Source of the DNA: Macrostomum lignano
Taxonomy: Eukaryota
Length of the DNA stretch: 64,000 nt
Assembly: GCA_002269645.1 (NCBI GenBank)
Contig: NIVC01003032.1
Coordinates: 1 to 64,000, forward strand
Reading direction: 5' to 3'
Part shown: positions 3,478 to 62,770 of the stretch, one piece after another
Layout: each line of letters opens with the position of its first letter
Numbering within the stretch: the first letter of the stretch is position 1
The notes under the pieces: generated by a model
The model's database searches: none
What the model saw: only the letters and a program-made list of their open reading frames with translations
What the model was told of the DNA's origin: nothing
Position numbers and translations under genes: made by a program

Positions 3478-3488
3478 CTCTGCTACCA
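3478..3488 (-). promoter_or_regulatory. Primer-binding site (tRNA-iMet)
   Basis: Minus strand reads TGGTAGCAGAG, complementary to the 3' end of metazoan initiator tRNA-Met (...CTCTGCTACCA). It abuts the LTR, 14 nt before the gag ATG. Confidence 0.85.
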
Positions 3489-5810: not shown

Positions 5811-6178
5811 GGCCGTCACCCCAGCTTGTTTAGTTTTACTGCCCCAAGCTTTTGATTGGCCGTCACCCCAGCTTGTTTAGTTTTACTGCCCCAAGCTTTT
5901 GATTGGCCGTCACCCCAGCTTGCTTAATTTTACTGCCCCAAGCATTTAATTGGGCCGTCACCCCAGCTTGCTTAGTTTTACTGCCCCAAGCTTTTGATTG
6001 GCCGTCACCCTAGCTTGCTTAGTTTTACTGCCCCAAGCTTTTGATTGGCCGTCACCCCAGCTTGTTTAGTTTTACTGCCCCAAGCTTTTGATTGGCCGTC
6101 ACCCCAGCTTGTTTAGTTTTACTGCCCCAAGCTTTTGATTGGCCGTCACCCTAGCTTGCTTAGGTTGACTGCCCCAAG
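5811..6178. repeat. 47-bp minisatellite (~8 copies)
   Basis: Unit GGCCGTCACCCCAGCTTGTTTAGTTTTACTGCCCCAAGCTTTTGATT, starting at 5811, 5858 and onward. Confidence 0.95.
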
Positions 6179-6254
6179 CGATGGCTCACCACACAAATCT
6201 GCTGCAAAAAACATATTAAAGCTGCCGCCCAATCTTGCAGCAGAGCCAGTCTCA

Positions 6255-7724
6255 ATGTCCAGCAGCGCCGCCATTGACGAAGGCTACCAGGGCCCGCTAG
6301 CCAGCAAAATACGCGCCAAATTAAGCGCCGAGTTGGCGCCAAGCCACCTGCTGGTAATCAACGAGTCCGCTGGGCACGGAGCCGGGCCCACCGGGGAGTC
6401 GCATTTTAAGGTGCGGTCAAGTTTTATTTATATTTTTTTGTTAAAAGCAGGGGTTGTACGCACCCTGGCGCACTTTAAGCGACATTGTCACACAACCGGC
6501 GAGAGGCATTACTACCCATTACGCCGATTCCCCTGAGCAGGCACACAAGCGTGCGGATACATCACACAGGAGTGTACAGCGGCCCCAACTTTATTTTATC
6601 GTTAGGCATGTACACTTCACTGTGCCTTGGGGATTGGTCCTCAAGCTGACCGCTAATTGCACGAGCAGAGCCAAGCCAAGATTCCTATTTAGCTCCAATC
6701 AATGCTCTTGGAATCGAGCCTATGCCGCTTGCACATCAGAGCGCCGCGCTAGACGGCCCTCCCCCTGTACTATATCTAGAGATGCAGGACAAATTGACAC
6801 TCCTACAGTTAACCTGTTCGAACCACCTTAAAATTCTACGCAATCATTAACTGAAATATTGCCATTGTAAATCCTCTAAAAAGCAAATCTTCCTTCATAT
6901 CCCCGCAACACTGTGTGTGTGCCTTCTGAGTCTTCAAATCTTATTGTTAATCGCCTTTCAACACTAAAAAACTGGCCTTTAAATCCTTATTGTAAATCGG
7001 CATTCAGATCCCCATGAAAATTAGCGTAATGATCGGCCTTAAAAAATCCCTGTTGTTTAATGGCCTTGTATCCCCCGATGAGATTCGGCCTTCAAATCCA
7101 TATTTTTTTATAAATCGGCCTTTATAAATCCCTATTTCTGAACCGGCCTTCAAATCTCTATTTCTGGATCGGCCTTCAAATCCCTATTTCTGGATCGGCC
7201 TTCAAATCCCTATTTCTGGATCGGCCTTCAAATCCCTATTTCTGGATCGGCCTTCAAATCCCTATTTCTGAATCGACCTTTAAATTCTTATTTCTGGATC
7301 GGCCTTCAAATCCCTATTTCTGAATCGGCCTTCAAATCCCATTTTTTTAAATCGGCCTTCAAATTCCCATTTTCTGAATCGGCCTTCAAATCCCCATTTC
7401 TGAATCGGCCTTCAAATCCCCATTTCTGAATCGGTCTTCAAATCCCTATTTCTGAATCGTGCTTCACAAGAAGCAATCGCACATACATACACCTGTCAAT
7501 CCCCTCCGCAGGTAGTGGTGGTGTCGGACCGGTTCGCTTCCGTGGCCCGCCTCCAACGGCACCGGATGGTGAACGACAGCCTTGCCGAAGAGTTGAATAC
7601 GCAAAGCGCAGATCACAAACAGAAAATTCACGCCCTCAGCATTGTGGCGAAGACTCCGGAGGAGTGGGCAGCCAGCGACGCCGTGCCCGCCACACCGCCG
7701 TGCGGGGGCGGTGGCGGACGCTGA
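6255..7724 (+). CDS. BOLA1: BolA-like protein 1; exons 6255-6410 and 7512-7724
   Basis: Contains GPLASKIRAKL, INESAGH, ESHFK|VVVVSDRF, RHRMVN, IHALSI and TPPCGGG. A phase-0 GT-AG intron (6411-7511) joins the two exons. The start codon is uncertain (a longer N-terminus is possible). Confidence 0.9.
7085..7459. repeat. 26-bp intronic minisatellite
   Basis: Unit TCGGCCTTCAAATCCCTATTTCTGGA (e.g. 7169, 7195) inside the BOLA1 intron. Confidence 0.93.
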
Positions 7725-7959
7725 CAAGAATTTTTCTTCTCCGATTTGTTAAGTAGTAATGAACGCGCTTGAATGTAGCTTTTTGATACAAGCAAATAAA
7801 TAAAGATCATGAAGTCTATGCGACTTTTTTTTATTCGACCACCAGATTGTTCAGCCACAGCAGGCGCAGTTTAGGTTGACGTGACTTGGTGATTTTTTGT
7901 TCAGGTTGAGATTTTAGCGATTTTTAGCTTAGCTTAGGGTAAGGTTTCACAGTCCAATG

Positions 7960-8321
7960 GTGAGATTTTGAGATTTCTGTTTTAGGGCGAGATTTTGTGA
8001 TTCCCAGTCTAAGGTTGAGATTTTGTGATTCCCACCCTATTTTGAGATTTTGTGATTCCCAGTCTAAGGTTGAGATTTTGTGATTCCCAGTCTAAGGTTG
8101 AGATTTTGTGATTCCCAGTCTAAGGTTGAGATTTTGAGATTCCCATTCTAAGGTTGAGATTTTGAGATTCCCATTGTTGGGTGAGATTTATAGATTCCCA
8201 TTGTAGGGTGAGATTTTGATATTCCCATTGTAGGGTGAGATTTTGAGATTCCAATTGTAGGGTGAGATTTTGAGATTTCCATTGTAGAGTGAGATTTTGA
8301 GATTCCAATTGTAGGGTGAGA
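7960..8321. repeat. 27-28-bp minisatellite
   Basis: Units TGAGATTTTG(T/A)GATTCCCA...AGG(T/G) between BOLA1 and TPRG1L. Confidence 0.9.
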
Positions 8322-8396
8322 TCTTGTTATTGTTTGAGAATGCAACTTTCCGCCGCATTGCCCATGCAGTTGAAAATATTTTTCTGCCAGTCTGAA

Positions 8397-9591
8397 ATGT
8401 CCTCCAACTCGCCGAACTCCTCGCCCTCCAAGTCCACCCTGGACGCCAATCTGTTGAACTTCCCGCCCCGCCGGGAGCGCTTCTTCGTTGCCATGGTGCC
8501 GCTGCAGGAGGCGGTGGAGGCCTGTCAACGCCTGGCGGTCAGCCCGGACACGGACGGCCAGGTGCTGTCCAGCTTCGTGCTGACGGAGACTGACCACTGG
8601 GGCAACAACTACGAGAAGCTGGTGTTCCTCACCGAGCGGTCGGTTGTGCTCAGCAAGTTCGACTTTGTCACCCGGCGGCATCGGCACTCGCGCCGGCTGT
8701 TGTTCAGCGACCTCACCAAGGTGGCGCTGGGCGACCTGACCCTGCCGGCGCGCTCCTTGGCGCCGATGCGCTGCCACGGCGCCCTTCGACTGTTCTGGGG
8801 CGAGCCGAGCCGTGTGGGGGTGGGGCAGACCTGGAACCCCTTCAGCTCGGTGGCCATTCCCTACACCACCCTGGCTCATCACCCGCTGCACTACTGCGAG
8901 CCCGAGGCCAAGAACCCGGTGTACGACTTGGACTGCTTCGCCTCGTCACTGATTGGCACTTTGGCTGATCGGGTACCTCAGGCATGAAACACCTGTCTGC
9001 TTGCTGGGGTTTTTCTCTGCTTTCTCTCCTCACGAGGGCCAAATCCCCAGGCTTAGCGTGCTCAGGGGGTCATCGAAATGAGCGTGAGTCCCACTGAGAA
9101 CGTTACCGTGACAAGAATCGCTAAAGAGTTCAAGTTGCAAACAAAACTCACTGGTGACTCTATAGCGACTCCAGCACGCCTCAGACACGACCCTACGAGT
9201 CATTATAGAAGCGCCATAAAACACCTGAAATTGACTCTTCGGCTACTCTTTGACGACGTTTTTTAGCGACTTGTACCGTGACATCTTGTTTTAGAATCGT
9301 CCAGCAAGTGACTGTGGGGTGCTTCTTGCTTTACTGTTCTATAACAAACAGTTCACGGGGGTTTGATAAATTTGGTCCAAAAAGTAATAAATGAAAGCAA
9401 AGTGTTTTAATAAGTCTGGAAACATTGCCGTCTAAAATATGTATTACACAATTTGCTTTGCTCGGTCGCGCCCACAGGTGCAAGTGGTGTCGGAGCCGCT
9501 GCCACTGAACCTATATCACGGCATCTCGTCAACCGTGTTCAACCAGAGCTGGCTGGGCTACTCAAAGGATCGAAATGGAGCCAGTTTTTAA
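8397..9591 (+). CDS. TPRG1L: Tumor protein p63-regulated gene 1-like (hSac2 domain); exons 8397-8972 and 9478-9591
   Basis: Contains LTETDHWGNNYEKLVFLTERSVVLSKFDF, WNPFSS and IPYTTLAHHP. A second exon after the cccacag acceptor encodes VQVVSEPLPLNLYHGISSTVFNQSWLGYSKDRNGASF*, resembling the TPRG1L C-terminus (LGYS..RG..GF). Phase-0 junction. Confidence 0.85.
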
Positions 9592-10837: not shown

Positions 10838-11630
10838 AGCTACTGAGCAATTAATTAACTTTGACCGATTTCAATTGTTTTTTTAGTCTCGTTGTGCAAT
10901 TGAAGCCCGCCCTGTTCCATGTTTTGGGTGTTTTAAGTTCAGGATAATGTTCTACTTTACCCAAAGAGAGCCGTATATTACCGGAGCTGTATATTTAGGG
11001 AAGTCCACCATTTTTTGCTTGCTGTTGGCTGTGAATATCGCCGCGGTATTTTATTAGAAAGTATCCCTAGAACTGTTTTGAATTTTAATATTCGGTCGTT
11101 TTATCAACTGGAATATCGCACCATCTATCATAGATTACTCATCGATCAATATTCTAATATTTTATATTAATTTGCTGTCTTTGCTGTGCTTCTTTATTGT
11201 CTCGTGCGTTTAACCCCGTAGCAGCTTTTTGCCACTGTTTTTGTGCGATGCCTTTGCAACACCATTTCCTGTTTTCAGTCATAAAAATAAAATTCAACGC
11301 TACTCATGCTACTGCTTAGCAGTAGTCTAAAACGAACCTTATTTGTTTTAATTAACAATAAATTTGTGATTTACGCATAAAACGCCTCGTTATCGGGATG
11401 TCTGTAGATTGTTATCAAGCACTATATCACACTTGAAGAATTAGGTTTTGTTTTTGTACTGTATTTATCCTCTTCTTTCACATTAAAGTACACAGGGCCA
11501 AGTCTGATTGGAAGTCGGTGAGAGTTGGAAAATAGAAACTGATGATGAGTGGAAAAAATGGGAACACGTGCGAACGACCATCGACATTCTACCCGTAACT
11601 GCTGCAAAATGGCGAATTGCTCAATCGCTC

Positions 11631-14600
11631 TGACACTAAATGGTCATAACTGAGATACAGAGTCGTCACAACTGATACAGAGTCACTCTAACTGACACTG
11701 AATCGCCACAACTGATACAGAGTCGCTCTAACTGACACTGAATCGTCACAACTGATACAGAGTCACTCTAACTGACACTGAATCGTCACAACTGATACAG
11801 AGTCACTCTAACTGACACTGAATCGTCACAACTGATACAGAGTCACTCTAACTGACACTGAATCGTCACAACTGACACTGAATCTTCACAACTGACACTG
11901 AATCTTCACAACTGACACTGAATCTTCACAACTGACACTGAATCGTCATAACTGACACTGAATCGTCATAACTGACACTGAATCTTCACAACTGACACTG
12001 AATCGTCATAACTGACACTGAATCGTCATAACTGAAACTGAATCGTCACAACTGACACTGAATCGTCATAACTGACACTGAATCGTCACAATTGATACAG
12101 AGTCGCTCTAACTGACAGAATCGTCACAACTGACACTGAATCTTCACAACTGACACTGAATCTTCACAACTGACACTGAATCTTCACAACTGATACAGAG
12201 TCACTCTAACTGACACTAAATCGTCACAACTGACACTGAATCTTCACAACTGACACTGAATCTTCACAACTGACACTGAATCTTCACAACTGACACTGAA
12301 TCGTCATAACTGACACTGAATCGTCATAACTGACACTGAATCTTCACAACTGACACTGAATCGTCATAACTGACACTGAATCGTCATAACTGACACTGAA
12401 TCGTCACAACTGACACTGAATCGTCATAACTGACACTGAATCGCCACAACTGATACAGAGTCGCTCTAACTGACAATGAATCGTCACAACTGATACAGAG
12501 TCACTCTAACTGACACTGAATCGCCACAACTGATACAGAGTCGCTCTAACTGACACTGAATCGTCACAACTGACACTGAATCGTCATAACTGACACTGAA
12601 TCGTCACAATTGATACAGAGTCGCTCTAACTGACAGAATCGTCACAACTGACACTGAATCTTCACAACTGACACTGAATCTTCACAACTGACACTGAATC
12701 TTCACAACTGATACAGAGTCACTCTAACTGACACTGAATCGTCACAACTGACACTGAATCTTCACAACTGACACTGAATCTTCACAACTGACACTGAATC
12801 TTCACAACTGACACTGAATCGTCATAACTGACACTGAATCTTCACAACTGACACTGAATCGTCATAACTGACACTGAATCGTCATAACTGACACTGAATC
12901 GTCACAACTGACACTGAATCGTCATAACTGACACTGAATCGTCACAACTGATACAGAGTCGCTCTAACTGACAGAATCGTCACAACTGACACTGAATCGT
13001 CATAACTGACACTGAATCGTCACAACTGATACAGAGTCACTCTAACTGACAGAATCGTCACAACTGACACTGAATCGTCATAACTGACAGAATCGTCACT
13101 ACTGATACAGAGTCACTCTAACTGACAGAATCGTCACAACTGACACTGAATCGTCATAACTGACACTGAATCGTCACAACTGACACTGAATCGTCATAAC
13201 TGACACTGAATCGTCACAACTGATACAGAGTCACTCTAACTGACAGAATCGTCACAACTGACACTGAATCGTCATAACTGACACTGAATCGTCACAACTG
13301 ACACTGAATCGTCACAACTGACACTGAATCTTCACAACTGACACTGAATCGTCACAACTGATACAGAGTCACTCTAACTGACAGAATCGTCACAACTGAC
13401 ACTGAATCGTCATAACTGACACTGAATCGTCACAACTGATACAGAGTCACTCTAACTGACAGAATCGTCACAACTGACACTGAATCGTCATAACTGACAC
13501 TGAATCGTCACAACTGATACAGAGTCACTCTAACTGACAGAATCGTCACAACTGACACTGAATCGTCATAACTGACACTGAATCGTCACAACTGATACAG
13601 AGTCACTCTAACTGACAGAATCGTCACAACTGACACTGAATCTTCACAACTGACACTGAATCTTCACAACTGACACTGAATCGTCACAACTGACACTGAA
13701 TCGTCACAACTGACACTGAATCTTCACAACTGACACTGAATCGTCACAACTGATACAGAGTCACTCTAACTGACAGAATCGTCACAACTGACACTGAATC
13801 GTCATAACTGACACTGAATCGTCACAACTGATACAGAGTCACTCTAACTGACAGAATCGTCACAACTGACACTGAATCGTCATAACTGACACTGAATCGT
13901 CACAACTGATACAGAGTCACTCTAACTGACACTGAATCGTCACAACTGATACAGAGTCACTCTAACTGACAGAATCGTTACAACTGACACTGAATCTTCA
14001 CAACTGTCACTGAATCGTCACAACTGACACTGAATCGTCATAACTGACACTGAATCGTCATAACTGACACTGAATCGTCACAACTGACACTGAATCTTCA
14101 CAACTGACACTGAATCGTCATAACTGACACTGAATCGTCATAACTGACACTGAATCGTCATAACTGACACTGAATCGTCACAACTGACACTGAATCGTCA
14201 TAACTGACACTGAATCGTCATAACTGACACTGAATCGTCACAACTGACACTGAATCTTCACAACTGACACTGAATCGTCACAACTGATACAGAGTCACTC
14301 TAACTGACAGAATCGTCACAACTGACACTGAATCGTCATAACTGACACTGAATCGTCACAACTGATACAGAGTCACTCTAACTGACAGAATCGTCACAGC
14401 TGACACTGAATCGTCATAACTGACACTGAATCGTCACAACTGATACAGAGTCACTCTAACTGACACTGAATCGTCACAACTGATACAGAGTCACTCTAAC
14501 TGACAGAATCGTTACAACTGACACTGAATCTTCACAACTGTCACTGAATCGTCACAACTGACACTGAATCGTCATAACTGACACTGAATCGTCACAACTG

Positions 14601-17600
14601 ACACTGAATCGTCATAACTGACACTGAATCGCTCTAACTGACAGAATCTTCACAACTGACACTGAATCGCTCTAACTGACAGAATCTTCACAACTGACAC
14701 TGAATCGCTCTAACTGACAGAATCTTCACAACTGACACTGAATCGCTCTAACTGACAGAATCTTCACAACTGACACTGAATCGCTCTAACTGACAGAATC
14801 TTCACAACTGACACTGAATCGTCATAACTGACACTGAATCGTCACAACTGATACAGAGTCACTCTAACTGACAGAATCGTCACAACTGACACTGAATCGT
14901 CATAACTGACACTGAATCGTCACAACTGATACAGAGTCACTCTAACTGACACTGAATCGTCACAACTGATACAGAGTCACTCTAACTGACAGAATCGTTA
15001 CAACTGACACTGAATCTTCACAACTGTCACTGAATCGTCACAACTGACACTGAATCGTCATAACTGACACTGAATCGTCACAACTGACACTGAATCGTCA
15101 TAACTGACACTGAATCGCTCTAACTGACAGAATCTTCACAACTGACACTGAATCGCTCTAACTGACAGAATCTTCACAACTGACACTGAATCGCTCTAAC
15201 TGACAGAATCTTCACAACTGACACTGAATCGCTCTAACTGACAGAATCTTCACAACTGACACTGAATCGCTCTAACTGACAGAATCTTCACAACTGACAC
15301 TGAATCGCTCTAACTGACAGAATCTTCACAACTGACACTGAATCGCTCTAACTGACAGAATCTTCACAACTGACACTGAATCGCTCTAACTGACAGAATC
15401 TTCACAACTGACACTGAATCGTCATAACTGACACTGAATCGTCACAACTGATACAGAGTCACTCTAACTGACAGAATCGTCACAACTGACACTGAATCGT
15501 CATAACTGACACTGAATCGTCACAACTGATACAGAGTCACTCTAACTGACACTGAATCGTCACAACTGATACAGAGTCACTCTAACTGACAGAATCGTTA
15601 CAACTGACACTGAATCTTCACAACTGTCACTGAATCGTCACAACTGACACTGAATCGTCATAACTGACACTGAATCGTCACAACTGACACTGAATCGTCA
15701 TAACTGACACTGAATCGCTCTAACTGACAGAATCTTCACAACTGACACTGAATCGCTCTAACTGACAGAATCTTCACAACTGACACTGAATCGCTCTAAC
15801 TGACAGAATCTTCACAACTGACACTGAATCGCTCTAACTGACAGAATCTTCACAACTGACACTGAATCGCTCTAACTGACAGAATCTTCACAACTGACAC
15901 TGAATCGTCATAACTGACACTGAATCGTCACAACTGATACAGAGTCACTCTAACTGACAGAATCGTCACAACTGACACTGAATCGTCATAACTGACACTG
16001 AATCGTCACAACTGATACAGAGTCACTCTAACTGACACTGAATCGTCACAACTGATACAGAGTCACTCTAACTGACAGAATCGTTACAACTGACACTGAA
16101 TCTTCACAACTGTCACTGAATCGTCACAACTGACACTGAATCGTCAAAACTGACACTGAATCGTCACAACTGACACTGAATCGTCATAACTGACACTGAA
16201 TCGCTCTAACTGACAGAATCTTCACAACTGACACTGAATCGCTCTAACTGACAGAATCTTCACAACTGACACTGAATCGCTCTAACTGACAGAATCTTCA
16301 CAACTGACACTGAATCGCTCTAACTGACAGAATCTTCACAACTGACACTGAATCGCTCTAACTGACAGAATCTTCACAACTGACACTGAATCGCTCTAAC
16401 TGACAGAATCTTCACAACTGACACTGAATCGCTCTAACTGACAGAATCTTCACAACTGACACTGAATCGCTCTAACTGACAGAATCTTCACAACTGACAC
16501 TGAATCGTCATAACTGACACTGAATCGTCACAACTGATACAGAGTCACTCTAACTGACAGAATCGTCACAACTGACACTGAATCGTCATAACTGACACTG
16601 AATCGTCACAACTGATACAGAGTCACTCTAACTGACACTGAATCGTCACAATTGATACAGAGTCGCTCTAACTGACAGAATCGTCACAACTGACACTGAA
16701 TCTTCACAACTGACACTGAATCTTCACAACTGACACTGAATCTTCACAACTGATACAGAGTCACTCTAACTGACACTAAATCGTCACAACTGACACTGAA
16801 TCTTCACAACTGACACTGAATCTTCACAACTGACACTGAATCTTCACAACTGACACTGAATCGTCATAACTGACACTGAATCGTCATAACTGACACTGAA
16901 TCTTCACAACTGACACTGAATCGTCATAACTGACACTGAATCGTCATAACTGACACTGAATCGTCACAACTGACACTGAATCGTCATAACTGACACTGAA
17001 TCGCCACAACTGATACAGAGTCGCTCTAACTGACAATGAATCGTCACAACTGATACAGAGTCACTCTAACTGACACTGAATCGCCACAACTGATACAGAG
17101 TCGCTCTAACTGACACTGAATCGTCACAACTGACACTGAATCGTCATAACTGACACTGAATCGTCACAATTGATACAGAGTCGCTCTAACTGACAGAATC
17201 GTCACAACTGACACTGAATCTTCACAACTGACACTGAATCTTCACAACTGACACTGAATCTTCACAACTGATACAGAGTCACTCTAACTGACACTGAATC
17301 GTCACAACTGACACTGAATCTTCACAACTGACACTGAATCTTCACAACTGACACTGAATCTTCACAACTGACACTGAATCGTCATAACTGACACTGAATC
17401 TTCACAACTGACACTGAATCGTCATAACTGACACTGAATCGTCATAACTGACACTGAATCGTCACAACTGACACTGAATCGTCATAACTGACACTGAATC
17501 GTCACAACTGATACAGAGTCGCTCTAACTGACAGAATCGTCACAACTGACACTGAATCGTCATAACTGACACTGAATCGTCACAACTGATACAGAGTCAC

Positions 17601-20600
17601 TCTAACTGACAGAATCGTCACAACTGACACTGAATCGTCATAACTGACAGAATCGTCACACTGATACAGAGTCACTCTAACTGACAGAATCGTCACAACT
17701 GACACTGAATCGTCATAACTGACACTGAATCGTCACAACTGACACTGAATCGTCATAACTGACACTGAATCGTCACAACTGATACAGAGTCACTCTAACT
17801 GACAGAATCGTCACAACTGACACTGAATCGTCATAACTGACACTGAATCGTCACAACTGACACTGAATCGTCACAACTGACACTGAATCTTCACAACTGA
17901 CACTGAATCGTCACAACTGATACAGAGTCACTCTAACTGACAGAATCGTCACAACTGACACTGAATCGTCATAACTGACACTGAATCGTCACAACTGATA
18001 CAGAGTCACTCTAACTGACAGAATCGTCACAACTGACACTGAATCGTCATAACTGACACTGAATCGTCACAACTGATACAGAGTCACTCTAACTGACAGA
18101 ATCGTCACAACTGACACTGAATCGTCATAACTGACACTGAATCGTCACAACTGATACAGAGTCACTCTAACTGACAGAATCGTCACAACTGACACTGAAT
18201 CTTCACAACTGACACTGAATCTTCACAACTGACACTGAATCGTCACAACTGACACTGAATCGTCACAACTGACACTGAATCTTCACAACTGACACTGAAT
18301 CGTCACAACTGATACAGAGTCACTCTAACTGACAGAATCGTCACAACTGACACTGAATCGTCATAACTGACACTGAATCGTCACAACTGATACAGAGTCA
18401 CTCTAACTGACAGAATCGTCACAACTGACACTGAATCGTCATAACTGACACTGAATCGTCACAACTGATACAGAGTCACTCTAACTGACAGAATCGTCAC
18501 AACTGACACTGAATCTTCACAACTGACACTGAATCTTCACAACTGACACTGAATCGTCACAACTGACACTGAATCGTCACAACTGACACTGAATCTTCAC
18601 AACTGACACTGAATCGTCACAACTGATACAGAGTCACTCTAACTGACAGAATCGTCACAACTGACACTGAATCGTCATAACTGACACTGAATCGTCACAA
18701 CTGATACAGAGTCACTCTAACTGACAGAATCGTCACAACTGACACTGAATCGTCATAACTGACACTGAATCGTCACAACTGATACAGAGTCACTCTAACT
18801 GACACTGAATCGTCACAACTGATACAGAGTCACTCTAACTGACAGAATCGTTACAACTGACACTGAATCTTCACAACTGTCACTGAATCGTCACAACTGA
18901 CACTGAATCGTCATAACTGACACTGAATCGTCATAACTGACACTGAATCGTCACAACTGACACTGAATCTTCACAACTGACACTGAATCGTCATAACTGA
19001 CACTGAATCGTCATAACTGACACTGAATCGTCATAACTGACACTGAATCGTCACAACTGACACTGAATCGTCATAACTGACACTGAATCGTCATAACTGA
19101 CACTGAATCGTCACAACTGACACTGAATCTTCACAACTGACACTGAATCGTCACAACTGATACAGAGTCACTCTAACTGACAGAATCGTCACAACTGACA
19201 CTGAATCGTCATAACTGACACTGAATCGTCACAACTGATACAGAGTCACTCTAACTGACAGAATCGTCACAACTGACACTGAATCGTCATAACTGACACT
19301 GAATCGTCACAACTGATACAGAGTCACTCTAACTGACACTGAATCGTCACAACTGATACAGAGTCACTCTAACTGACAGAATCGTTACAACTGACACTGA
19401 ATCTTCACAACTGTCACTGAATCGTCACAACTGACACTGAATCGTCATAACTGACACTGAATCGTCACAACTGACACTGAATCGTCATAACTGACACTGA
19501 ATCGCTCTAACTGACAGAATCTTCACAACTGACACTGAATCGCTCTAACTGACAGAATCTTCACAACTGACACTGAATCGTCACAACTGACACTGAATCT
19601 TCACAACTGACACTGAATCTTCACAACTGACACTGAATCTTCACAACTGACACTGAATCGTCATAACTGACACTGAATCTTCACAACTGACACTGAATCG
19701 TCATAACTGACACTGAATCGTCATAACTGACACTGAATCGTCACAACTGACACTGAATCGTCATAACTGACACTGAATCGTCACAACTGATACAGAGTCG
19801 CTCTAACTGACAGAATCGTCACAACTGACACTGAATCGTCATAACTGACACTGAATCGTCACAACTGATACAGAGTCACTCTAACTGACAGAATCGTCAC
19901 AACTGACACTGAATCGTCATAACTGACAGAATCGTCACACTGATACAGAGTCACTCTAACTGACAGAATCGTCACAACTGACACTGAATCGTCATAACTG
20001 ACACTGAATCGTCACAACTGACACTGAATCGTCATAACTGACACTGAATCGTCACAACTGATACAGAGTCACTCTAACTGACAGAATCGTCACAACTGAC
20101 ACTGAATCGTCATAACTGACACTGAATCGTCACAACTGACACTGAATCGTCACAACTGACACTGAATCTTCACAACTGACACTGAATCGTCACAACTGAT
20201 ACAGAGTCACTCTAACTGACAGAATCGTCACAACTGACACTGAATCGTCATAACTGACACTGAATCGTCACAACTGATACAGAGTCACTCTAACTGACAG
20301 AATCGTCACAACTGACACTGAATCGTCATAACTGACACTGAATCGTCACAACTGATACAGAGTCACTCTAACTGACAGAATCGTCACAACTGACACTGAA
20401 TCGTCATAACTGACACTGAATCGTCACAACTGATACAGAGTCACTCTAACTGACAGAATCGTCACAACTGACACTGAATCTTCACAACTGACACTGAATC
20501 TTCACAACTGACACTGAATCGTCACAACTGACACTGAATCGTCACAACTGACACTGAATCTTCACAACTGACACTGAATCGTCACAACTGATACAGAGTC

Positions 20601-23600
20601 ACTCTAACTGACAGAATCGTCACAACTGACACTGAATCGTCATAACTGACACTGAATCGTCACAACTGATACAGAGTCACTCTAACTGACAGAATCGTCA
20701 CAACTGACACTGAATCGTCATAACTGACACTGAATCGTCACAACTGATACAGAGTCACTCTAACTGACAGAATCGTCACAACTGACACTGAATCTTCACA
20801 ACTGACACTGAATCTTCACAACTGACACTGAATCGTCACAACTGACACTGAATCGTCACAACTGACACTGAATCTTCACAACTGACACTGAATCGTCACA
20901 ACTGATACAGAGTCACTCTAACTGACAGAATCGTCACAACTGACACTGAATCGTCATAACTGACACTGAATCGTCACAACTGATACAGAGTCACTCTAAC
21001 TGACAGAATCGTCACAACTGACACTGAATCGTCATAACTGACACTGAATCGTCACAACTGATACAGAGTCACTCTAACTGACACTGAATCGTCACAACTG
21101 ATACAGAGTCACTCTAACTGACAGAATCGTTACAACTGACACTGAATCTTCACAACTGTCACTGAATCGTCACAACTGACACTGAATCGTCATAACTGAC
21201 ACTGAATCGTCATAACTGACACTGAATCGTCACAACTGACACTGAATCTTCACAACTGACACTGAATCGTCATAACTGACACTGAATCGTCATAACTGAC
21301 ACTGAATCGTCATAACTGACACTGAATCGTCACAACTGACACTGAATCGTCATAACTGACACTGAATCGTCATAACTGACACTGAATCGTCACAACTGAC
21401 ACTGAATCTTCACAACTGACACTGAATCGTCACAACTGATACAGAGTCACTCTAACTGACAGAATCGTCACAACTGACACTGAATCGTCATAACTGACAC
21501 TGAATCGTCACAACTGATACAGAGTCACTCTAACTGACAGAATCGTCACAACTGACACTGAATCGTCATAACTGACACTGAATCGTCACAACTGATACAG
21601 AGTCACTCTAACTGACACTGAATCGTCACAACTGATACAGAGTCACTCTAACTGACAGAATCGTTACAACTGACACTGAATCTTCACAACTGTCACTGAA
21701 TCGTCACAACTGACACTGAATCGTCATAACTGACACTGAATCGTCACAACTGACACTGAATCGTCATAACTGACACTGAATCGCTCTAACTGACAGAATC
21801 TTCACAACTGACACTGAATCGCTCTAACTGACAGAATCTTCACAACTGACACTGAATCGCTCTAACTGACAGAATCTTCACAACTGACACTGAATCGCTC
21901 TAACTGACAGAATCTTCACAACTGACACTGAATCGCTCTAACTGACAGAATCTTCACAACTGACACTGAATCGTCATAACTGACACTGAATCGTCACAAC
22001 TGATACAGAGTCACTCTAACTGACAGAATCGTCACAACTGACACTGAATCGTCATAACTGACACTGAATCGTCACAACTGATACAGAGTCACTCTAACTG
22101 ACACTGAATCGTCACAACTGATACAGAGTCACTCTAACTGACAGAATCGTTACAACTGACACTGAATCTTCACAACTGTCACTGAATCGTCACAACTGAC
22201 ACTGAATCGTCATAACTGACACTGAATCGTCACAACTGACACTGAATCGTCATAACTGACACTGAATCGCTCTAACTGACAGAATCTTCACAACTGACAC
22301 TGAATCGCTCTAACTGACAGAATCTTCACAACTGACACTGAATCGCTCTAACTGACAGAATCTTCACAACTGACACTGAATCGCTCTAACTGACAGAATC
22401 TTCACAACTGACACTGAATCGCTCTAACTGACAGAATCTTCACAACTGACACTGAATCGCTCTAACTGACAGAATCTTCACAACTGACACTGAATCGCTC
22501 TAACTGACAGAATCTTCACAACTGACACTGAATCGCTCTAACTGACAGAATCTTCACAACTGACACTGAATCGTCATAACTGACACTGAATCGTCACAAC
22601 TGATACAGAGTCACTCTAACTGACAGAATCGTCACAACTGACACTGAATCGTCATAACTGACACTGAATCGTCACAACTGATACAGAGTCACTCTAACTG
22701 ACACTGAATCGTCACAACTGATACAGAGTCACTCTAACTGACAGAATCGTTACAACTGACACTGAATCTTCACAACTGTCACTGAATCGTCACAACTGAC
22801 ACTGAATCGTCATAACTGACACTGAATCGTCACAACTGACACTGAATCGTCATAACTGACACTGAATCGCTCTAACTGACAGAATCTTCACAACTGACAC
22901 TGAATCGCTCTAACTGACAGAATCTTCACAACTGACACTGAATCGCTCTAACTGACAGAATCTTCACAACTGACACTGAATCGCTCTAACTGACAGAATC
23001 TTCACAACTGACACTGAATCGCTCTAACTGACAGAATCTTCACAACTGACACTGAATCGTCATAACTGACACTGAATCGTCACAACTGATACAGAGTCAC
23101 TCTAACTGACAGAATCGTCACAACTGACACTGAATCGTCATAACTGACACTGAATCGTCACAACTGATACAGAGTCACTCTAACTGACACTGAATCGTCA
23201 CAACTGATACAGAGTCACTCTAACTGACAGAATCGTTACAACTGACACTGAATCTTCACAACTGTCACTGAATCGTCACAACTGACACTGAATCGTCAAA
23301 ACTGACACTGAATCGTCACAACTGACACTGAATCGTCATAACTGACACTGAATCGCTCTAACTGACAGAATCTTCACAACTGACACTGAATCGCTCTAAC
23401 TGACAGAATCTTCACAACTGACACTGAATCGCTCTAACTGACAGAATCTTCACAACTGACACTGAATCGCTCTAACTGACAGAATCTTCACAACTGACAC
23501 TGAATCGCTCTAACTGACAGAATCTTCACAACTGACACTGAATCGCTCTAACTGACAGAATCTTCACAACTGACACTGAATCGCTCTAACTGACAGAATC

Positions 23601-26600
23601 TTCACAACTGACACTGAATCGCTCTAACTGACAGAATCTTCACAACTGACACTGAATCGTCATAACTGACACTGAATCGTCACAACTGATACAGAGTCAC
23701 TCTAACTGACAGAATCGTCACAACTGACACTGAATCGTCATAACTGACACTGAATCGTCACAACTGATACAGAGTCACTCTAACTGACACTGAATCGTCA
23801 CAATTGATACAGAGTCGCTCTAACTGACAGAATCGTCACAACTGACACTGAATCTTCACAACTGACACTGAATCTTCACAACTGACACTGAATCTTCACA
23901 ACTGATACAGAGTCACTCTAACTGACACTAAATCGTCACAACTGACACTGAATCTTCACAACTGACACTGAATCTTCACAACTGACACTGAATCTTCACA
24001 ACTGACACTGAATCGTCATAACTGACACTGAATCGTCATAACTGACACTGAATCTTCACAACTGACACTGAATCGTCATAACTGACACTGAATCGTCATA
24101 ACTGACACTGAATCGTCACAACTGACACTGAATCGTCATAACTGACACTGAATCGCCACAACTGATACAGAGTCGCTCTAACTGACAATGAATCGTCACA
24201 ACTGATACAGAGTCACTCTAACTGACACTGAATCGCCACAACTGATACAGAGTCGCTCTAACTGACACTGAATCGTCACAACTGACACTGAATCGTCATA
24301 ACTGACACTGAATCGTCACAATTGATACAGAGTCGCTCTAACTGACAGAATCGTCACAACTGACACTGAATCTTCACAACTGACACTGAATCTTCACAAC
24401 TGACACTGAATCTTCACAACTGATACAGAGTCACTCTAACTGACACTGAATCGTCACAACTGACACTGAATCTTCACAACTGACACTGAATCTTCACAAC
24501 TGACACTGAATCTTCACAACTGACACTGAATCGTCATAACTGACACTGAATCTTCACAACTGACACTGAATCGTCATAACTGACACTGAATCGTCATAAC
24601 TGACACTGAATCGTCACAACTGACACTGAATCGTCATAACTGACACTGAATCGTCACAACTGATACAGAGTCGCTCTAACTGACAGAATCGTCACAACTG
24701 ACACTGAATCGTCATAACTGACACTGAATCGTCACAACTGATACAGAGTCACTCTAACTGACAGAATCGTCACAACTGACACTGAATCGTCATAACTGAC
24801 AGAATCGTCACTACTGATACAGAGTCACTCTAACTGACAGAATCGTCACAACTGACACTGAATCGTCATAACTGACACTGAATCGTCACAACTGACACTG
24901 AATCGTCATAACTGACACTGAATCGTCACAACTGATACAGAGTCACTCTAACTGACAGAATCGTCACAACTGACACTGAATCGTCATAACTGACACTGAA
25001 TCGTCACAACTGACACTGAATCGTCACAACTGACACTGAATCTTCACAACTGACACTGAATCGTCACAACTGATACAGAGTCACTCTAACTGACAGAATC
25101 GTCACAACTGACACTGAATCGTCATAACTGACACTGAATCGTCACAACTGATACAGAGTCACTCTAACTGACAGAATCGTCACAACTGACACTGAATCGT
25201 CATAACTGACACTGAATCGTCACAACTGATACAGAGTCACTCTAACTGACAGAATCGTCACAACTGACACTGAATCGTCATAACTGACACTGAATCGTCA
25301 CAACTGATACAGAGTCACTCTAACTGACAGAATCGTCACAACTGACACTGAATCTTCACAACTGACACTGAATCTTCACAACTGACACTGAATCGTCACA
25401 ACTGACACTGAATCGTCACAACTGACACTGAATCTTCACAACTGACACTGAATCGTCACAACTGATACAGAGTCACTCTAACTGACAGAATCGTCACAAC
25501 TGACACTGAATCGTCATAACTGACACTGAATCGTCACAACTGATACAGAGTCACTCTAACTGACAGAATCGTCACAACTGACACTGAATCGTCATAACTG
25601 ACACTGAATCGTCACAACTGATACAGAGTCACTCTAGCTGACACTGAATCGTCACAACTGATACAGAGTCACTCTAACTGACAGAATCGTTACAACTGAC
25701 ACTGAATCTTCACAACTGTCACTGAATCGTCACAACTGACACTGAATCGTCATAACTGACACTGAATCGTCATAACTGACACTGAATCGTCACAACTGAC
25801 ACTGAATCTTCACAACTGACACTGAATCGTCATAACTGACACTGAATCGCTCTAACTGACAGAATCTTCACAACTGACACTGAATCGCTCTAACTGACAG
25901 AATCTTCACAACTGACACTGAATCGCTCTAACTGACAGAATCTTCACAACTGACACTGAATCGCTCTAACTGACAGAATCTTCACAACTGACACTGAATC
26001 GCTCTAACTGACAGAATCTTCACAACTGACACTGAATCGTCATAACTGACACTGAATCGTCACAACTGATACAGAGTCACTCTAACTGACAGAATCGTCA
26101 CAACTGACACTGAATCGTCATAACTGACACTGAATCGTCACAACTGATACAGAGTCACTCTAACTGACACTGAATCGTCACAACTGATACAGAGTCACTC
26201 TAACTGACAGAATCGTTACAACTGACACTGAATCTTCACAACTGTCACTGAATCGTCACAACTGACACTGAATCGTCATAACTGACACTGAATCGTCACA
26301 ACTGACACTGAATCGTCATAACTGACACTGAATCGCTCTAACTGACAGAATCTTCACAACTGACACTGAATCGCTCTAACTGACAGAATCTTCACAACTG
26401 ACACTGAATCGCTCTAACTGACAGAATCTTCACAACTGACACTGAATCGCTCTAACTGACAGAATCTTCACAACTGACACTGAATCGCTCTAACTGACAG
26501 AATCTTCACAACTGACACTGAATCGTCATAACTGACACTGAATCGTCACAACTGATACAGAGTCACTCTAACTGACAGAATCGTCACAACTGACACTGAA

Positions 26601-29600
26601 TCGTCATAACTGACACTGAATCGTCACAACTGATACAGAGTCACTCTAACTGACACTGAATCGTCACAACTGATACAGAGTCACTCTAACTGACAGAATC
26701 GTTACAACTGACACTGAATCTTCACAACTGTCACTGAATCGTCACAACTGACACTGAATCGTCATAACTGACACTGAATCGTCACAACTGACACTGAATC
26801 GTCATAACTGACACTGAATCGCTCTAACTGACAGAATCTTCACAACTGACACTGAATCGCTCTAACTGACAGAATCTTCACAACTGACACTGAATCGCTC
26901 TAACTGACAGAATCTTCACAACTGACACTGAATCGCTCTAACTGACAGAATCTTCACAACTGACACTGAATCGCTCTAACTGACAGAATCTTCACAACTG
27001 ACACTGAATCGCTCTAACTGACAGAATCTTCACAACTGACACTGAATCGCTCTAACTGACAGAATCTTCACAACTGACACTGAATCGCTCTAACTGACAG
27101 AATCTTCACAACTGACACTGAATCGTCATAACTGACACTGAATCGTCACAACTGATACAGAGTCACTCTAACTGACAGAATCGTCACAACTGACACTGAA
27201 TCGTCATAACTGACACTGAATCGTCACAACTGATACAGAGTCACTCTAACTGACACTGAATCGTCACAACTGATACAGAGTCACTCTAACTGACAGAATC
27301 GTTACAACTGACACTGAATCTTCACAACTGTCACTGAATCGTCACAACTGACACTGAATCGTCATAACTGACACTGAATCGTCACAACTGACACTGAATC
27401 GTCATAACTGACACTGAATCGCTCTAACTGACAGAATCTTCACAACTGACACTGAATCGCTCTAACTGACAGAATCTTCACAACTGACACTGAATCGCTC
27501 TAACTGACAGAATCTTCACAACTGACACTGAATCGCTCTAACTGACAGAATCTTCACAACTGACACTGAATCGCTCTAACTGACAGAATCTTCACAACTG
27601 ACACTGAATCGCTCTAACTGACAGAATCTTCACAACTGACACTGAATCGCTCTAACTGACAGAATCTTCACAACTGACACTGAATCGCTCTAACTGACAG
27701 AATCTTCACAACTGACACTGAATCGTCATAACTGACACTGAATCGTCACAACTGATACAGAGTCACTCTAACTGACAGAATCGTCACAACTGACACTGAA
27801 TCGTCATAACTGACACTGAATCGTCACAACTGATACAGAGTCACTCTAACTGACACTGAATCGTCACAACTGATACAGAGTCACTCTAACTGACAGAATC
27901 GTTACAACTGACACCGAATCTTCACAACTGTCACTGAATCGTCACAACTGACACTGAATCGTCATAACTGACACTGAATCGTCACAACTGACACTGAATC
28001 GTCATAACTGACACTGAATCGCTCTAACTGACAGAATCTTCACAACTGACACTGAATCGCTCTAACTGACAGAATCTTCACAACTGACACTGAATCGCTC
28101 TAACTGACAGAATCTTCACAACTGACACTGAATCGCTCTAACTGACAGAATCTTCACAACTGACACTGAATCGCTCTAACTGACAGAATCTTCACAACTG
28201 ACACTGAATCGCTCTAACTGACAGAATCTTCACAACTGACACTGAATCGCTCTAACTGACAGAATCTTCACAACTGACACTGAATCGCTCTAACTGACAG
28301 AATCTTCACAACTGACACTGAATCGTCATAACTGACACTGAATCGTCACAACTGATACAGAGTCACTCTAACTGACAGAATCGTCACAACTGACACTGAA
28401 TCGTCATAACTGACACTGAATCGTCACAACTGATACAGAGTCACTCTAACTGACACTGAATCGTCACAACTGATACAGAGTCACTCTAACTGACAGAATC
28501 GTTACAACTGACACTGAATCTTCACAACTGTCACTGAATCGTCACAACTGACACTGAATCGTCATAACTGACACTGAATCGTCACAACTGACACTGAATC
28601 GTCATAACTGACACTGAATCGCTCTAACTGACAGAATCTTCACAACTGACACTGAATCGCTCTAACTGACAGAATCTTCACAACTGACACTGAATCGCTC
28701 TAACTGACAGAATCTTCACAACTGACACTGAATCGCTCTAACTGACAGAATCTTCACAACTGACACTGAATCGCTCTAACTGACAGAATCTTCACAACTG
28801 ACACTGAATCGCTCTAACTGACAGAATCTTCACAACTGACACTGAATCGTCATAACTGACACTGAATCGTCACAACTGATACAGAGTCACTCTAACTGAC
28901 AGAATCGTCACAACTGACACTGAATCGTCATAACTGACACTGAATCGTCACAACTGATACAGAGTCACTCTAACTGACAGAATCGTCACAACTGACACTG
29001 AATCGTCATAACTGACACTGAATCGTCACAACTGATACAGAGTCACTCTAACTGACACTGAATCGTCACAACTGATACAGAGTCACTCTAACTGACAGAA
29101 TCGTTACAACTGACACTGAATCTTCACAACTGTCACTGAATCGTCACAACTGACACTGAATCGTCATAACTGACACTGAATCGTCACAACTGACACTGAA
29201 TCGTCATAACTGACACTGAATCGCTCTAACTGACAGAATCTTCACAACTGACACTGAATCGCTCTAACTGACAGAATCTTCACAACTGACACTGAATCGC
29301 TCTAACTGACAGAATCTTCACAACTGACACTGAATCGCTCTAACTGACAGAATCTTCACAACTGACACTGAATCGCTCTAACTGACAGAATCTTCACAAC
29401 TGACACTGAATCGCTCTAACTGACAGAATCTTCACAACTGACACTGAATCGTCATAACTGACACTGAATCGTCACAACTGATACAGAGTCACTCTAACTG
29501 ACAGAATCGTCACAACTGACACTGAATCGTCATAACTGACACTGAATCGTCACAACTGATACAGAGTCACTCTAACTGACACTGAATCGTCACAACTGAT

Positions 29601-30638
29601 ACAGAGTCACTCTAACTGACAGAATCGTCACAACTGACACTGAATCGTCATAACTGACACTGAATCGTCACAACTGACACTGAATCGTCATAACTGACAC
29701 TGAATCGCTCTAACTGACAGAATCTTCACAACTGACACTGAATCGCTCTAACTGACAGAATCTTCACAACTGACACTGAATCGCTCTAACTGACAGAATC
29801 TTCACAACTGACACTGAATCGCTCTAACTGACAGAATCTTCACAACTGACACTGAATCGCTCTAACTGACAGAATCTTCACAACTGACACTGAATCGCTC
29901 TAACTGACAGAATCTTCACAACTGACACTGAATCGCTCTAACTGACAGAATCTTCACAACTGACACTGAATCGCTCTAACTGACAGAATCTTCACAACTG
30001 ACACTGAATCGCTCTAACTGACAGAATCTTCACAACTGACACTGAATCGCTCTAACTGACAGAATCTTCACAACTGACACTGAATCGTCATAACTGACAC
30101 TGAATCGTCACAACTGATACAGAGTCACTCTAACTGACAGAATCGTCACAACTGACACTGAATCGTCATAACTGACACTGAATCGTCACAACTGATACAG
30201 AGTCACTCTAACTGACACTGAATCGTCACAACTGATACAGAGTCACTCTAACTGACAGAATCGTTACAACTGACACTGAATCTTCACAACTGTCACTGAA
30301 TCGTCACAACTGACACTGAATCGTCATAACTGACACTGAATCGTCATAACTGACACTGAATCGTCACAACTGACACTGAATCGTCATAACTGACACTGAA
30401 TCGCTCTAACTGACAGAATCTTCACAACTGACACTGAATCGCTCTAACTGACAGAATCTTCACAACTGACACTGAATCGCTCTAACTGACAGAATCTTCA
30501 CAACTGACACTGAATCGCTCTAACTGACAGAATCTTCACAACTGACACTGAATCGCTCTAACTGACAGAATCTTCACAACTGACACTGAATCGCTCTAAC
30601 TGACAGAATCTTCACAACTGATACAGAATCGCACTAAC
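11631..30638. repeat. ~19 kb satellite array of 20/18-bp monomers with higher-order repeats
   Basis: Monomers ACTGACACTGAATCGTCACA (and variants), ACTGATACAGAGTCACTCTA and an 18-mer ACTGACAGAATC(G/T)TCACA. No ORFs in the track across this span. Confidence 0.98.
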
Positions 30639-31708
30639 TACGGTAGAACCAGCAAAATGTATGTAGAATCGACACTAACTCTTTAAAATCGCTTAAAACT
30701 GCTGCAGAATGGCCCCTAGCAGCTGCAGAAGCACGCTTGAACGATAGACAGTGCAGCAGTTCAGGAAAGAATTGAAACCGACAGCAGCCGCAATGAATTG
30801 TGACATTAATATCGTGTGAAATATTAATTATGAATGAACAGGCAATCAGCCGGTTTGCAATTGTATTATGTGTATGTAAACAAAGCATTTACAAAACTAC
30901 CAATGCTAGTTGATATAAAAACGGCGAACAATGGTGAAACATTATTATTCTCATTATTATTTTAAATCGGTATGCAATTAGCAGTTGAAATTATTCTGAA
31001 CAAAGCAGGCGGTGACTGTGACAGTTGTTTGCCAAGCGGCAATCAACAATAAACTGACAGCAAAAAGTGCACTGCAATTAGACAGGAGCAGCTCGAACGG
31101 GAGGGGAGTTTAAAGACCAGCTAATGGGTATATAAAATAAGCAGAAGCCTGTTCAAGGGTCCTCACGGTCTCCTACAAATAGTTCTTGCACTGGCCACCC
31201 AATCACTGGCTCTGGCGCAGATTAAAATATTGAAACTGTTTATCTGCGTAGTCAGTAAATGGCTGCACAGCCAGTATGTACACAGGAACTGCCAGAGCCA
31301 GCAGAAACTAATCATTCAATTATATGCAACAGGTGAATATGCACGGACAGCATAAATATAGTATAAATATAGAAATAGCAGTTAGAACGGGACAACAAAG
31401 GAACACGGAAGGTCATTTACTTACAGAGAAGGTGCCCAAGGCCGATTTAGATTGAAGAGACAATCTCTAGGGAGATGGGGAAATGCAGGAGAGTGAACTA
31501 GCTGGATACAGGCTGGGTCAGAGCCGAAGAAATTTATAAAAAAAGGTCAATTTGAATAACACAACGGCGCAAGGAAGATGATTTTGTGAAGAAGAGTTGG
31601 ATGATCAGAGTTGCAAAATAAAGCAATTGAAACAGAAGAGACCAGCACGGAGCCGCTCCGCTTATTAAAAACAAAGGCAAATGTCTGCTTGGCCCATGGG
31701 CGGCGGCC

Positions 31709-40680
<8,972 letters not shown>

Positions 40681-40849
40681 CTGATTGTCGGTTTGGTGAG
40701 CATTTTGGTGTCTGAATTACTTCTTTAACTAATAACTTTGTGCAGTACACTGTGGACATAAGTTTTGTAAGATGTATTTAAAATAGCGTTATGTTTAAAT
40801 AAAAATGTAAAAAATTCGTTTTTTTTCTTTGATTTTTTGTGTGGTTACA

Positions 40850-57126: not shown

Positions 57127-59011
<1,885 letters not shown>

Positions 59012-60829: not shown

Positions 60830-61462
60830 TTCACTATAGACAAGACACATATCACAGTGCCATAGACACATGTCATAATGTACCATAGACACATGCCAGT
60901 ACCATAGTCACACGCCATATGTACCATAGTCACACGCCATATGTACCATAGACACACGCCATATGTACCATAGACACACGCCATATGTACCATAGACACA
61001 GGCCATATGTACCATAGTCACACGCCATATGTACCATAGACACACGCCATATGTACCATAGACACAGGCCATATGTACCATAGACACACGCCATATGTAC
61101 CATAGTCACACGCCATATGTACCATAGTCACACGCCATATGTACCATAGACACACGCCATATGTACCATAGACACACGCCATATGTACCATAGACACAGG
61201 CCATATGTACCATAGTCACACGCCATATGTACCATAGACACACGCCATATGTACCATAGACACAGGCCATATGTACCATAGACACACGCCATATGTACCA
61301 TAGTCACACGCCATATGTACCATAGTCACACGCCATATGTACCATAGACACACGCCATATGTACCATAGACACACGCCATATGTACCATAGACACAGGCC
61401 ATATGTACCATAGTCACACGCCATATGTACCATAGTCACACGCCATATGTACCATAGACACA
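60830..61462. repeat. 22-bp minisatellite
   Basis: Unit ACGCCATATGTACCATAG(A/T)CAC. Confidence 0.95.
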
Positions 61463-61677
61463 TGCCAGTTCCAAATCAGACCGCATCAAATAGCATCCGC
61501 TCCGAACTACGTCAAGGAATTCAGTATTGATGAAATTTATAGAAGTTCTGCATTCTGATTGGCTGAATCCAGCACCAGATGTCGTATCTGCTGTATAAGT
61601 AACCCCGTTGGATACTAATGATTTGCTAAATTTCCAAAATCAGTACAAGAAAGCTCACCTATTACAAGCCTGTTAAA

Positions 61678-62258
61678 ATGCCACCCACCGTATAACTGGC
61701 CCTCGCTCTGATAGCTCTGATTCACCTGATTGATTACCCAGCTCTCGCCTTGAACCAACCGGGTAAGACAGCGAGAACTTCTTTCAAACTTAATATCAAG
61801 AAAAATTCTCATTTTTCTACCCTAGTTGCTTCTGTCCCAATTTATTAAATTTCAGATTTTTCACCTGAAGAAATTGCCAGCCTTAATGAGGCTGTGGAAA
61901 AGCGATTCACAGGTAAACACCTAGGGGTCGTACTATAAAGCTGTCGTAGCGTAAGTTCGATCGTACGTCGGAACTTTTACACGGCGGAGATAGGAGCTAA
62001 GAACGATCGTATCTTACGATGGCTTTATAGAACGGGCCCCTATTCTGCACGGCGTAAACACGAGTCTGTTTTGTAAATACCTTGATTTTAAGCAAGAATT
62101 ATGGATTTATCGCTCCTCCTGCAGACCCGGAGAGCCTGTTCGGCAGTCCGCTGCAGTGGAACAGCGAGGACATCGAGTTCCGGCCGGCCTCCAGCACTGC
62201 GGGCTTCAAGCCGCTGAGAGGCAAGAGGACCCGAGGCCGAGGCAGACCTGACAACTGA
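61678..62258 (+). CDS. Putative secreted neuropeptide precursor; exons 61678-61762, 61856-61912, 62125-62258 (in-frame TAA at 61693-61695)
   Basis: Three exons joined by two canonical phase-1 GT-AG introns give MPPTV*LALALIALIHLIDYPALALNQPDFSPEEIASLNEAVEKRFTDPESLFGSPLQWNSEDIEFRPASSTAGFKPLRGKRTRGRGRPDN. It has a hydrophobic leader ending A-L-A, a KR site and a GKR amidation site. ATTAAA at 62333. Confidence 0.6.
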
Positions 62259-62444
62259 GCAGCTTATTAGACTGCAGACTAAACTACTCACACCTGTACT
62301 CGAGCTTAACACCTTCGATTCGAAAGGAGCTCATTAAAGTTTCATGCCAATTCGGAAAACTTTGAATTAAAACTAAGTAGGATCCCTGCAAGAATTGGCT
62401 CGCATATTTTAATTAGCGTTTTGTCTTACTATAAGTAGAGAAAT

Positions 62445-62770
62445 AAGCAAAATGCATAGAAATGGCGCCAACATGCATAGAAATGGCGCCATGCCCATAA
62501 TGCATAGAAATGGCGCCAAAGTGCATAGAAATGGCGCCAAAATGCATAGAAATGGTGCCATCATGCATAGAAATGGCGCAAAAATGCATAGAAATGGCAC
62601 CAAAATGCATAGAAATGGCACCAAAATGCATAGAAATTGCGCCAAAATGCATAGAAATGGTGCCAAAAATGCATAGAAATAGCGCCGAAATGCATAGAAA
62701 TGGCGCCAAAGGGCATAGAAATGGCGCCGAAATGCATAGAAATGGCGCCAAAATGTATAGAAATGGTGTC
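62445..62770. repeat. 21-bp minisatellite
   Basis: Unit AAATGCATAGAAATGG(C/T)(G/A)CCA. Confidence 0.93.

Follow-up and report, generated by a model that had tools for sequence, protein, structure and literature searches.

The question raised by this locus is whether three short exons within a 64,000-nucleotide stretch of Macrostomum lignano DNA (contig NIVC01003032.1, bases 1–64000; hereafter the window) form a real gene for a peptide precursor, what that gene would encode, and whether the copy found here can still make its product. A sequence-only reading had described a three-exon precursor, missed by the ORF track, that would release one amidated peptide of possible tachykinin or natalisin affinity, or else lineage-specific, and that carries a stop at codon 6. 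The answer that we favour, and hold to have somewhat better than an even chance, is a joint one: the intact gene is the source of a secreted signalling peptide (a neuropeptide or peptide hormone), and the copy in the window is a real null allele.

The gene model was rebuilt base by base. The three exons join into 276 nt with a 91-codon frame, which in the window translates as MPPTV, a stop, LALALIALIHLIDYPALALNQPDFSPEEIASLNEAVEKRFTDPESLFGSPLQWNSEDIEFRPASSTAGFKPLRGKRTRGRGRPDN and the terminal stop. The strong splice sites, the phase 1 position of both introns and the 91 codons claimed earlier came out exactly on this rebuild, and the two sister copies described below agree. A plain ORF list holds over exon 3 only a 58-aa ORF with a TTG start, as expected from the earlier remark that the ORF track had missed these exons. 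The model comprises the following features, where a slash marks a splice junction or cleavage site:

5′ UTR, 61645..61677, + strand: the PAA92305.1 model begins 33 nt 5′ of the ATG, at the counterpart of 61645.
Exon 1, coding part, 61678..61762, + strand: 85 nt with the start codon, the predicted signal peptide and the first propeptide bases; donor CCGG/GTAAGA.
Predicted signal peptide, codons 1–24, 61678–61749, + strand: hydrophobic core at residues 4–18; A-L-A/L site after residue 24.
Intron 1, 61763..61855, + strand: 93 nt, phase 1, GT..AG, 31% GC; boundaries the same in both annotated copies.
Exon 2, 61856..61912, + strand: 57 nt, symmetric (phase 1-1); acceptor TTTCAG/, donor ACAG/GTAAAC; contains the acidic spacer DFSPEEIASLNEAVE, K44-R45 (61900–61905) and two residues that open the predicted peptide.
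Intron 2, 61913..62124, + strand: phase 1; 212 nt in the window copy versus 93 nt in the other copies.
Exon 3, 62125..62258, + strand: 134 nt, acceptor CTCCTGCAG/; contains the remainder of the predicted 34-residue peptide, to R79 (62217–62219), then the putative amide donor Gly80 (62220–62222), K81-R82 (62223–62228), the tail TRGRGRPDN and a TGA stop.
Candidate poly(A) signal ATTAAA, 62333..62338, + strand: 75 nt past the stop, with another at 62366, both from a pattern scan.

The 5′ end of the mRNA likely lies just after the AG at 61642–61643. This AG may be a spliced-leader trans-splice acceptor, a reading suggested by the preceding AATCAG and by how common trans-splicing is in M. lignano (PMC5730564).

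Base composition separates exon 3 from its surroundings: it is 66% GC, and the introns are AT-rich. Its GC3 is 0.82 in the proposed frame, versus 0.55 and 0.61 in the other two, and matches that of the clear genes of the window (0.70–0.80). Exons 1 and 2 have an unremarkable GC3 of 0.48 and lack codon-position GC bias. A 90-codon frame stays open in just 4% of composition-matched shuffles.

We next considered the reading that takes the transcript to be non-coding and its 91-codon frame, with the motifs, to be fortuitous. Such a reading draws on the shortness of the ORF, its want of homologues, the few shuffles that do keep the frame open and the flat composition of exons 1 and 2. Against it, the frame spans two phase-matched junctions and uses the first ATG, which lies in an AAAATG context with 33 nt of mRNA ahead of it; a signal-peptide-like N-terminus and processing sites follow in the correct order; and the high GC3 of exon 3 appears in the proposed frame only. 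We consider a non-coding transcript very improbable. The three-exon gene itself is real and beyond chance, because the annotation of two other genomic copies places the exon boundaries at exactly the same points.

These two copies were retrieved using the product with Lys in place of the stop as the query. A word-indexed protein search matched two M. lignano entries only: PAA50402.1 ("hypothetical protein BOX15_Mlig008231g3", 91 aa) and the UniProt model A0A1I8H6M5, taken up below. Clustered with PAA50402.1 is PAA92305.1 ("BOX15_Mlig031932g1, partial", 102 aa), which is the 91-aa protein plus 11 N-terminal residues of translated 5′ UTR. The gene for PAA50402.1 lies on NIVC01003643.1 (locus L004) and that for PAA92305.1 on NIVC01000056.1 (locus L005). 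Three-way alignment of L004, L005 and the window demonstrated identical exon boundaries and splice sites. The three copies share 97–99.5% identity and the same synteny, with the gene lying between a 644-aa Ser/Thr kinase gene and a 502-aa GDA1_CD39 (NTPDase) gene. Exon 3 is protein-invariant across them, the sole difference being a synonymous GAC/GAT in L005, although this identity says little about constraint because the three copies are so close in sequence.

A threefold locus is in keeping with what is known of the source genome. The NIVC01 contigs belong to the Mlig_3_7 assembly of line DV1, in which non-repetitive blocks that occur in duplicate with at least 95% identity add up to about 180 Mb, a redundancy attributed to the additional large chromosomes of DV1 (PMC5730564). 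The GRIM-19 ORF of the window likewise occurs, in exact form, on three contigs of GCA_002269645.1; on one of them, NIVC01003032.1, bases 2998–7459 match window 2998–7459 without a difference.

The GenBank annotation of Mlig_3_7 was built from StringTie/TACO transcripts assembled from RNA-seq, with ORFs called by TransDecoder and non-coding transcripts removed (PMC5730564). Since it derives from RNA-seq transcripts, the three-exon splice pattern is transcript-supported, and this support belongs to the gene family rather than to each copy because reads cannot separate identical exons. With a stop at codon 6 and the removal of non-coding transcripts, the window copy would be dropped, which accounts for its being hidden. 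The earlier description of the gene as unannotated therefore holds for the window copy but not for its sisters: the gene is already modelled in GenBank, functionally unannotated and solely as a hypothetical protein, and only the window copy is hidden. An older gene model, UniProt A0A1I8H6M5 (72 aa), differs by an in-frame skip of the symmetric 57-nt exon 2. This skip removes the first KR, and signal-peptide cleavage would then leave a 36-residue amidated peptide.

The gene is also unmentioned in searchable papers: the gene identifiers and the strings FKPLR, PLRamide and KPLRG were absent from the relevant ones. Identifiers and motifs were likewise absent from the supplements of M. lignano papers; these files seem not to use that identifier format, and because the format apparently differs, the absence of the identifiers there carries no weight either way.

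To assess what the intact gene would encode, we examined its predicted product for processing signals. An n-region MPPTVK, a hydrophobic core at residues 4–18 (12–15 residues) and an ALA/LN cut after residue 24 together predict a signal peptide, as judged by simple rules (Kyte-Doolittle >1.5 for the core). Dibasic sites occur only at K44-R45 and K81-R82, the second in an R-G-K-R context, and Gly80, directly before K81-R82 in FKPLR-G-K-R, is the putative amide donor. The product has no cysteines, and no Pfam domain was matched in it at E≤0.01 or even at E≤10; no Rfam match was found across the whole window. The predicted pieces are an acidic 19-residue spacer, one amidated 34-mer and a basic 9-residue tail. 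The 34-mer, FADPESLFGSPLQWNSEDIEFRPASSTAGFKPLR-NH2, ends in AGFKPLR, is net acidic and has a computed monoisotopic mass of 3794.87. Hydrophobic leader, acidic spacer, KR, 34-residue peptide and G-KR, as earlier claimed, are thus all present in the intact product, which by its sequence has a prohormone and amidation architecture.

Prohormones are processed by signal peptidase, PC2/furin, carboxypeptidase E and PAM, and this product can be carried through the same steps. In the proposed mechanism, the starting point is a 91-residue preproprotein encoded by this gene, whose three syntenic copies are almost identical. Signal peptidase would cleave behind Ala24, and a PC2/furin-type convertase would then cleave behind K44-R45 and behind K81-R82 (R-G-K-R). 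A carboxypeptidase would strip the basic residues, and peptidylglycine alpha-amidating monooxygenase would turn Gly80 into a C-terminal amide. The outcome would be the one 34-residue amidated peptide, most likely a secreted signal of a lineage-restricted, unnamed family and, if it is a neuropeptide, presumably expressed in neurons. A further, monobasic cut at EFR/P, giving a 13-mer, is unlikely: under the known rules of prohormone cleavage, Pro at +1, an aromatic residue at −2 and the lack of an upstream basic residue all disfavour it.

The same features would suit any convertase-processed secretory protein. The product could accordingly be a secreted protein other than a neuropeptide, from a gland, the epidermis, the seminal fluid or the adhesive organ, cut at R-G-K-R by ubiquitous furin, with the Gly before KR incidental or amidation serving stability only. 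M. lignano is rich in fast-evolving, lineage-specific secreted reproductive proteins, according to two reports (PMC5977470, PMC7336406), and the database searches agree with such an origin in that they returned no homologue from another animal. What speaks for a signalling peptide instead is the compact, classical prohormone layout with its short tail and without cysteines or a domain. A non-neuropeptide role is unlikely in our judgement, while retaining an appreciable share of the probability.

The search behind this statement was an exhaustive phmmer run of PAA50402.1 against 1.84 billion representative proteins, which returned the gene itself and one spurious match only. The sole foreign match, a KKWNSQQLEGRP repeat protein, was rejected as spurious, its score being summed over 10 stretches. 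We used GRIM-19 as a control for database coverage and found nothing between 100% identity (M. lignano) and 47–54% identity (cestodes). This gap indicates databases without other Macrostomum species, so "no homologue" cannot here mean "not conserved".

We then compared the predicted peptide with known families. Arthropod tachykinin-related peptides end in S-G-F-x-G-x-R-amide, and dipteran natalisins carry Pro in FxPxRamide. The Macrostomum peptide resembles protostome tachykinin-related peptides in its predicted amidated C-terminal Arg, its Phe at −5 and the small residue plus Gly before it (AGF versus SGF), and it departs from them in having Pro at −3, one copy and 34 residues, where they have Gly, several copies and about 9–15 residues. 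F75-K-P-L-R79-G80 likewise fits the natalisin consensus FxxxRamide, many natalisins being FxPxRamide peptides, but the Macrostomum precursor is single-copy and its host a flatworm, whereas natalisin precursors are multi-copy and come from arthropods and tardigrades. A published study states both points: tachykinin-related peptides have the form FX1GX2Ramide, come from multi-copy precursors and were not found in flatworms, and natalisins, with an FxxxRamide consensus and multi-copy precursors, are confined to arthropods and tardigrades (PMC6880623).

On this comparison the tachykinin suggestion of the sequence-only reading fails, on the defining Gly replaced by Pro, on the single peptide per precursor and on its length of 34 residues. 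The natalisin suggestion survives in the motif and falters on the copy number and the host; the motif match is weak evidence because it involves two fixed residues (F and R), picked post hoc among many candidate families. The link to either family is a five-residue resemblance only, and no tachykinin family came up in either the phmmer or the Pfam search. If the peptide were a genuine member of these families in a flatworm, acting with its F-x-P-x-R-amide end on a tachykinin-type GPCR, this would explain the A-G-F-K-P-L-R-(G) C-terminus, which fits the published FxxxRamide consensus (PMC6880623) and resembles the arthropod tachykinin end. Given the counter-evidence just listed, we consider such membership very improbable. 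If it were true, this would be the first such ligand from a flatworm, N-terminally extended to 34 residues and in single copy, and natalisin-like peptides would be placed outside Ecdysozoa.

Pyrokinin/PBAN-type PRXamide peptides have the core FxPRLamide. They share with the Macrostomum peptide the C-terminal residue types (F, x, P, L/R) and the predicted amidated end, and differ from it in the order of the last two residues (PRL versus PLR in Macrostomum), so that the PRXamide core is missing. Motifs of NPF/NPY, pyrokinin, myomodulin, DH31/DH44 and allatotropin peptides do not fit. A net-acidic 34-mer present once per precursor departs from what is typical of the best-known short neuropeptides of invertebrates.

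The closest parallel in kind is with the planarian secreted peptide prohormone (spp) and neuropeptide precursor (npp) genes of Schmidtea mediterranea (PMC2953531), which are also small precursors known only by a signal peptide, basic sites and a Gly amide donor. Many of these precursors lack relatives beyond the flatworms, and the nervous system is where most of them are expressed (Collins et al. 2010, PMC2953531). The Macrostomum gene differs in having no sequence relation to them; the motifs PLRG, KPLR, GFKP and LRGKR occur nowhere in the supplementary text of that planarian peptidome study.

To determine whether the window copy could contribute any of this peptide, we compared it with its two sisters. 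Two lesions in the gene are confined to the window copy:

Nonsense codon TAA at codon 6, 61693..61695, + strand: A>T at 61693; the other copies have AAA (Lys).
Non-autonomous TIR element (MITE) of 117 bp, 61924..62040, strand not assigned: in intron 2, window copy only.

The earlier caveat, that the TAA marks either a dead copy or an error, can now be narrowed: in the three-way alignment both L004 and L005 carry AAA, so the TAA is not fixed in all copies and intact paralogues exist. In the window CDS, codon 1 is the only in-frame ATG, as Met42 is replaced by Val. A secreted product from this copy is thus predicted to be impossible, given the TAA at codon 6 and no in-frame ATG to rescue it. In the proposed mechanism, the change of Lys6 to TAA (A>T) would place a stop 5′ of both introns and, with Val at Met42, leave no product; extra copies in the DV1 genome would let this loss be tolerated.

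The window copy has six private single-nucleotide variants, at 61693, 61829 (intron 1), 61894, 61908, 61909 and 62048 (intron 2). Those in exon 2 comprise M42V (61894), a synonymous change (61908) and A47T (61909), so that exons 1 and 2 bear one nonsense and two missense changes versus an invariant exon 3 protein. All six variants and the private MITE fall within 61693–62048 (356 bp).

The 117-bp insertion has the look of a recently arrived Tc1/mariner-type MITE. A TA duplication borders it at 61922–61923 and 62041–62042, its inverted arms of 42 nt are 71% complementary, its termini read GGGG...CCCC, and the empty site ACACCTATTCTG is intact in L004 and L005. Length, terminal inverted repeats, TA target-site duplication and precise empty paralogous sites are all as in Stowaway-like (Tc1/mariner-type) MITEs; in contrast to these, the intron 2 element is present as one copy only within the 64-kb window.

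The adjacent Ser/Thr kinase gene (57127–59011, + strand) is also damaged, its window copy lacking about 600 bp relative to the 644-aa gene of both sisters. The deletion (window 58430–58580 versus L005 6634–7237) takes an exon end, one whole internal exon and donor sites; its junction at 58499/58500 shows TGAC microhomology and leaves an in-frame TGA at 58500–58502. By its predicted effect, the deletion adds another loss-of-function lesion to the contig, independent of the TAA. An exact look-up with a kinase ORF of the window gave no recorded match.

These observations bear on the alternative that TAA arose at 61693 through an error of assembly or polishing, or represents a variant that is rare or somatic, which would leave the window copy as functional as its sisters. 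Three copies at 97–99.5% identity do invite mis-assignment of reads during polishing. The substitution, however, sits among five more private variants and a private 117-bp insertion in 356 bp, which points to a distinct haplotype, and next to it on the contig the kinase gene bears its own disabling deletion of about 600 bp. Substitution errors that remain after polishing are also far rarer than the 1–2% of real divergence among copies. We regard an error or rare variant as quite improbable, and the TAA is probably real, because the private variants are clustered and an independent deletion disables the adjacent kinase gene. A reassigned TAA codon was rejected: the flatworm nuclear code is standard, the host belongs to the animals, and TAA also ends a gag-like ORF in the window. 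Judged from these lesions, what the window contains is either a null allele or a redundant duplicate in decay.

Variant sharing among the copies is mosaic. Across exons 1–2 and the introns, the window is the odd one out, with L004 and L005 alike. In the flanks (61560–61692 and 62049–62300), the window equals L004 save for the L004-private base 61602, and the private changes are in L005. Such a pattern points to exchange between the copies by recombination or gene conversion.

Should the amidated 34-mer indeed be produced from the intact copies, as we favour, a model of regeneration and sexual selection in which transgenesis and RNAi are available gains an orphan signalling peptide, apparently restricted to Macrostomum. 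The window copy is likewise a small, clean case of gene decay after the recent DV1 chromosome duplication: this one of the three copies carries a nonsense codon and a MITE insertion, and the gene beside it has a deletion. The finding is a plausible improvement of annotation and leaves current understanding unchanged.

The window further contains a gypsy-like retroelement and genes for GRIM-19/NDUFA13, Groucho/TLE, a protein kinase and a GDA1/CD39 NTPDase, together with very many minisatellites. The peptide gene is bracketed by two of these, a 22-bp unit repeated 28 times upstream (60860–61467), whose length varies among the three copies, and a 21-bp unit repeated 15 times downstream (62448–62766). 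In L004, a 5.2-kb array of a 24-bp unit (3978–9153) lies about 850 bp upstream of the peptide gene, and the other copies are without it. A 19-kb tandem array occupies 11630–30639, with the 20-bp unit CTGACACTGAATCGTCACAA in about 970 copies, a 78-bp higher-order period and a strong strand asymmetry (GC skew about −0.32). The Groucho/TLE gene (32900–40700, − strand), with its Q domain at 39760–40680 and a WD40 exon at 33685–34341, has introns, and possibly a coding spacer, packed with at least seven different minisatellite arrays of periods 21–46 bp. Fragments of a gypsy-type LTR retrotransposon lie at 891–3463 on the − strand, comprising gag with a CCHC knuckle (2654–3463) and RT-containing ORFs (891–2150) interrupted by stops.
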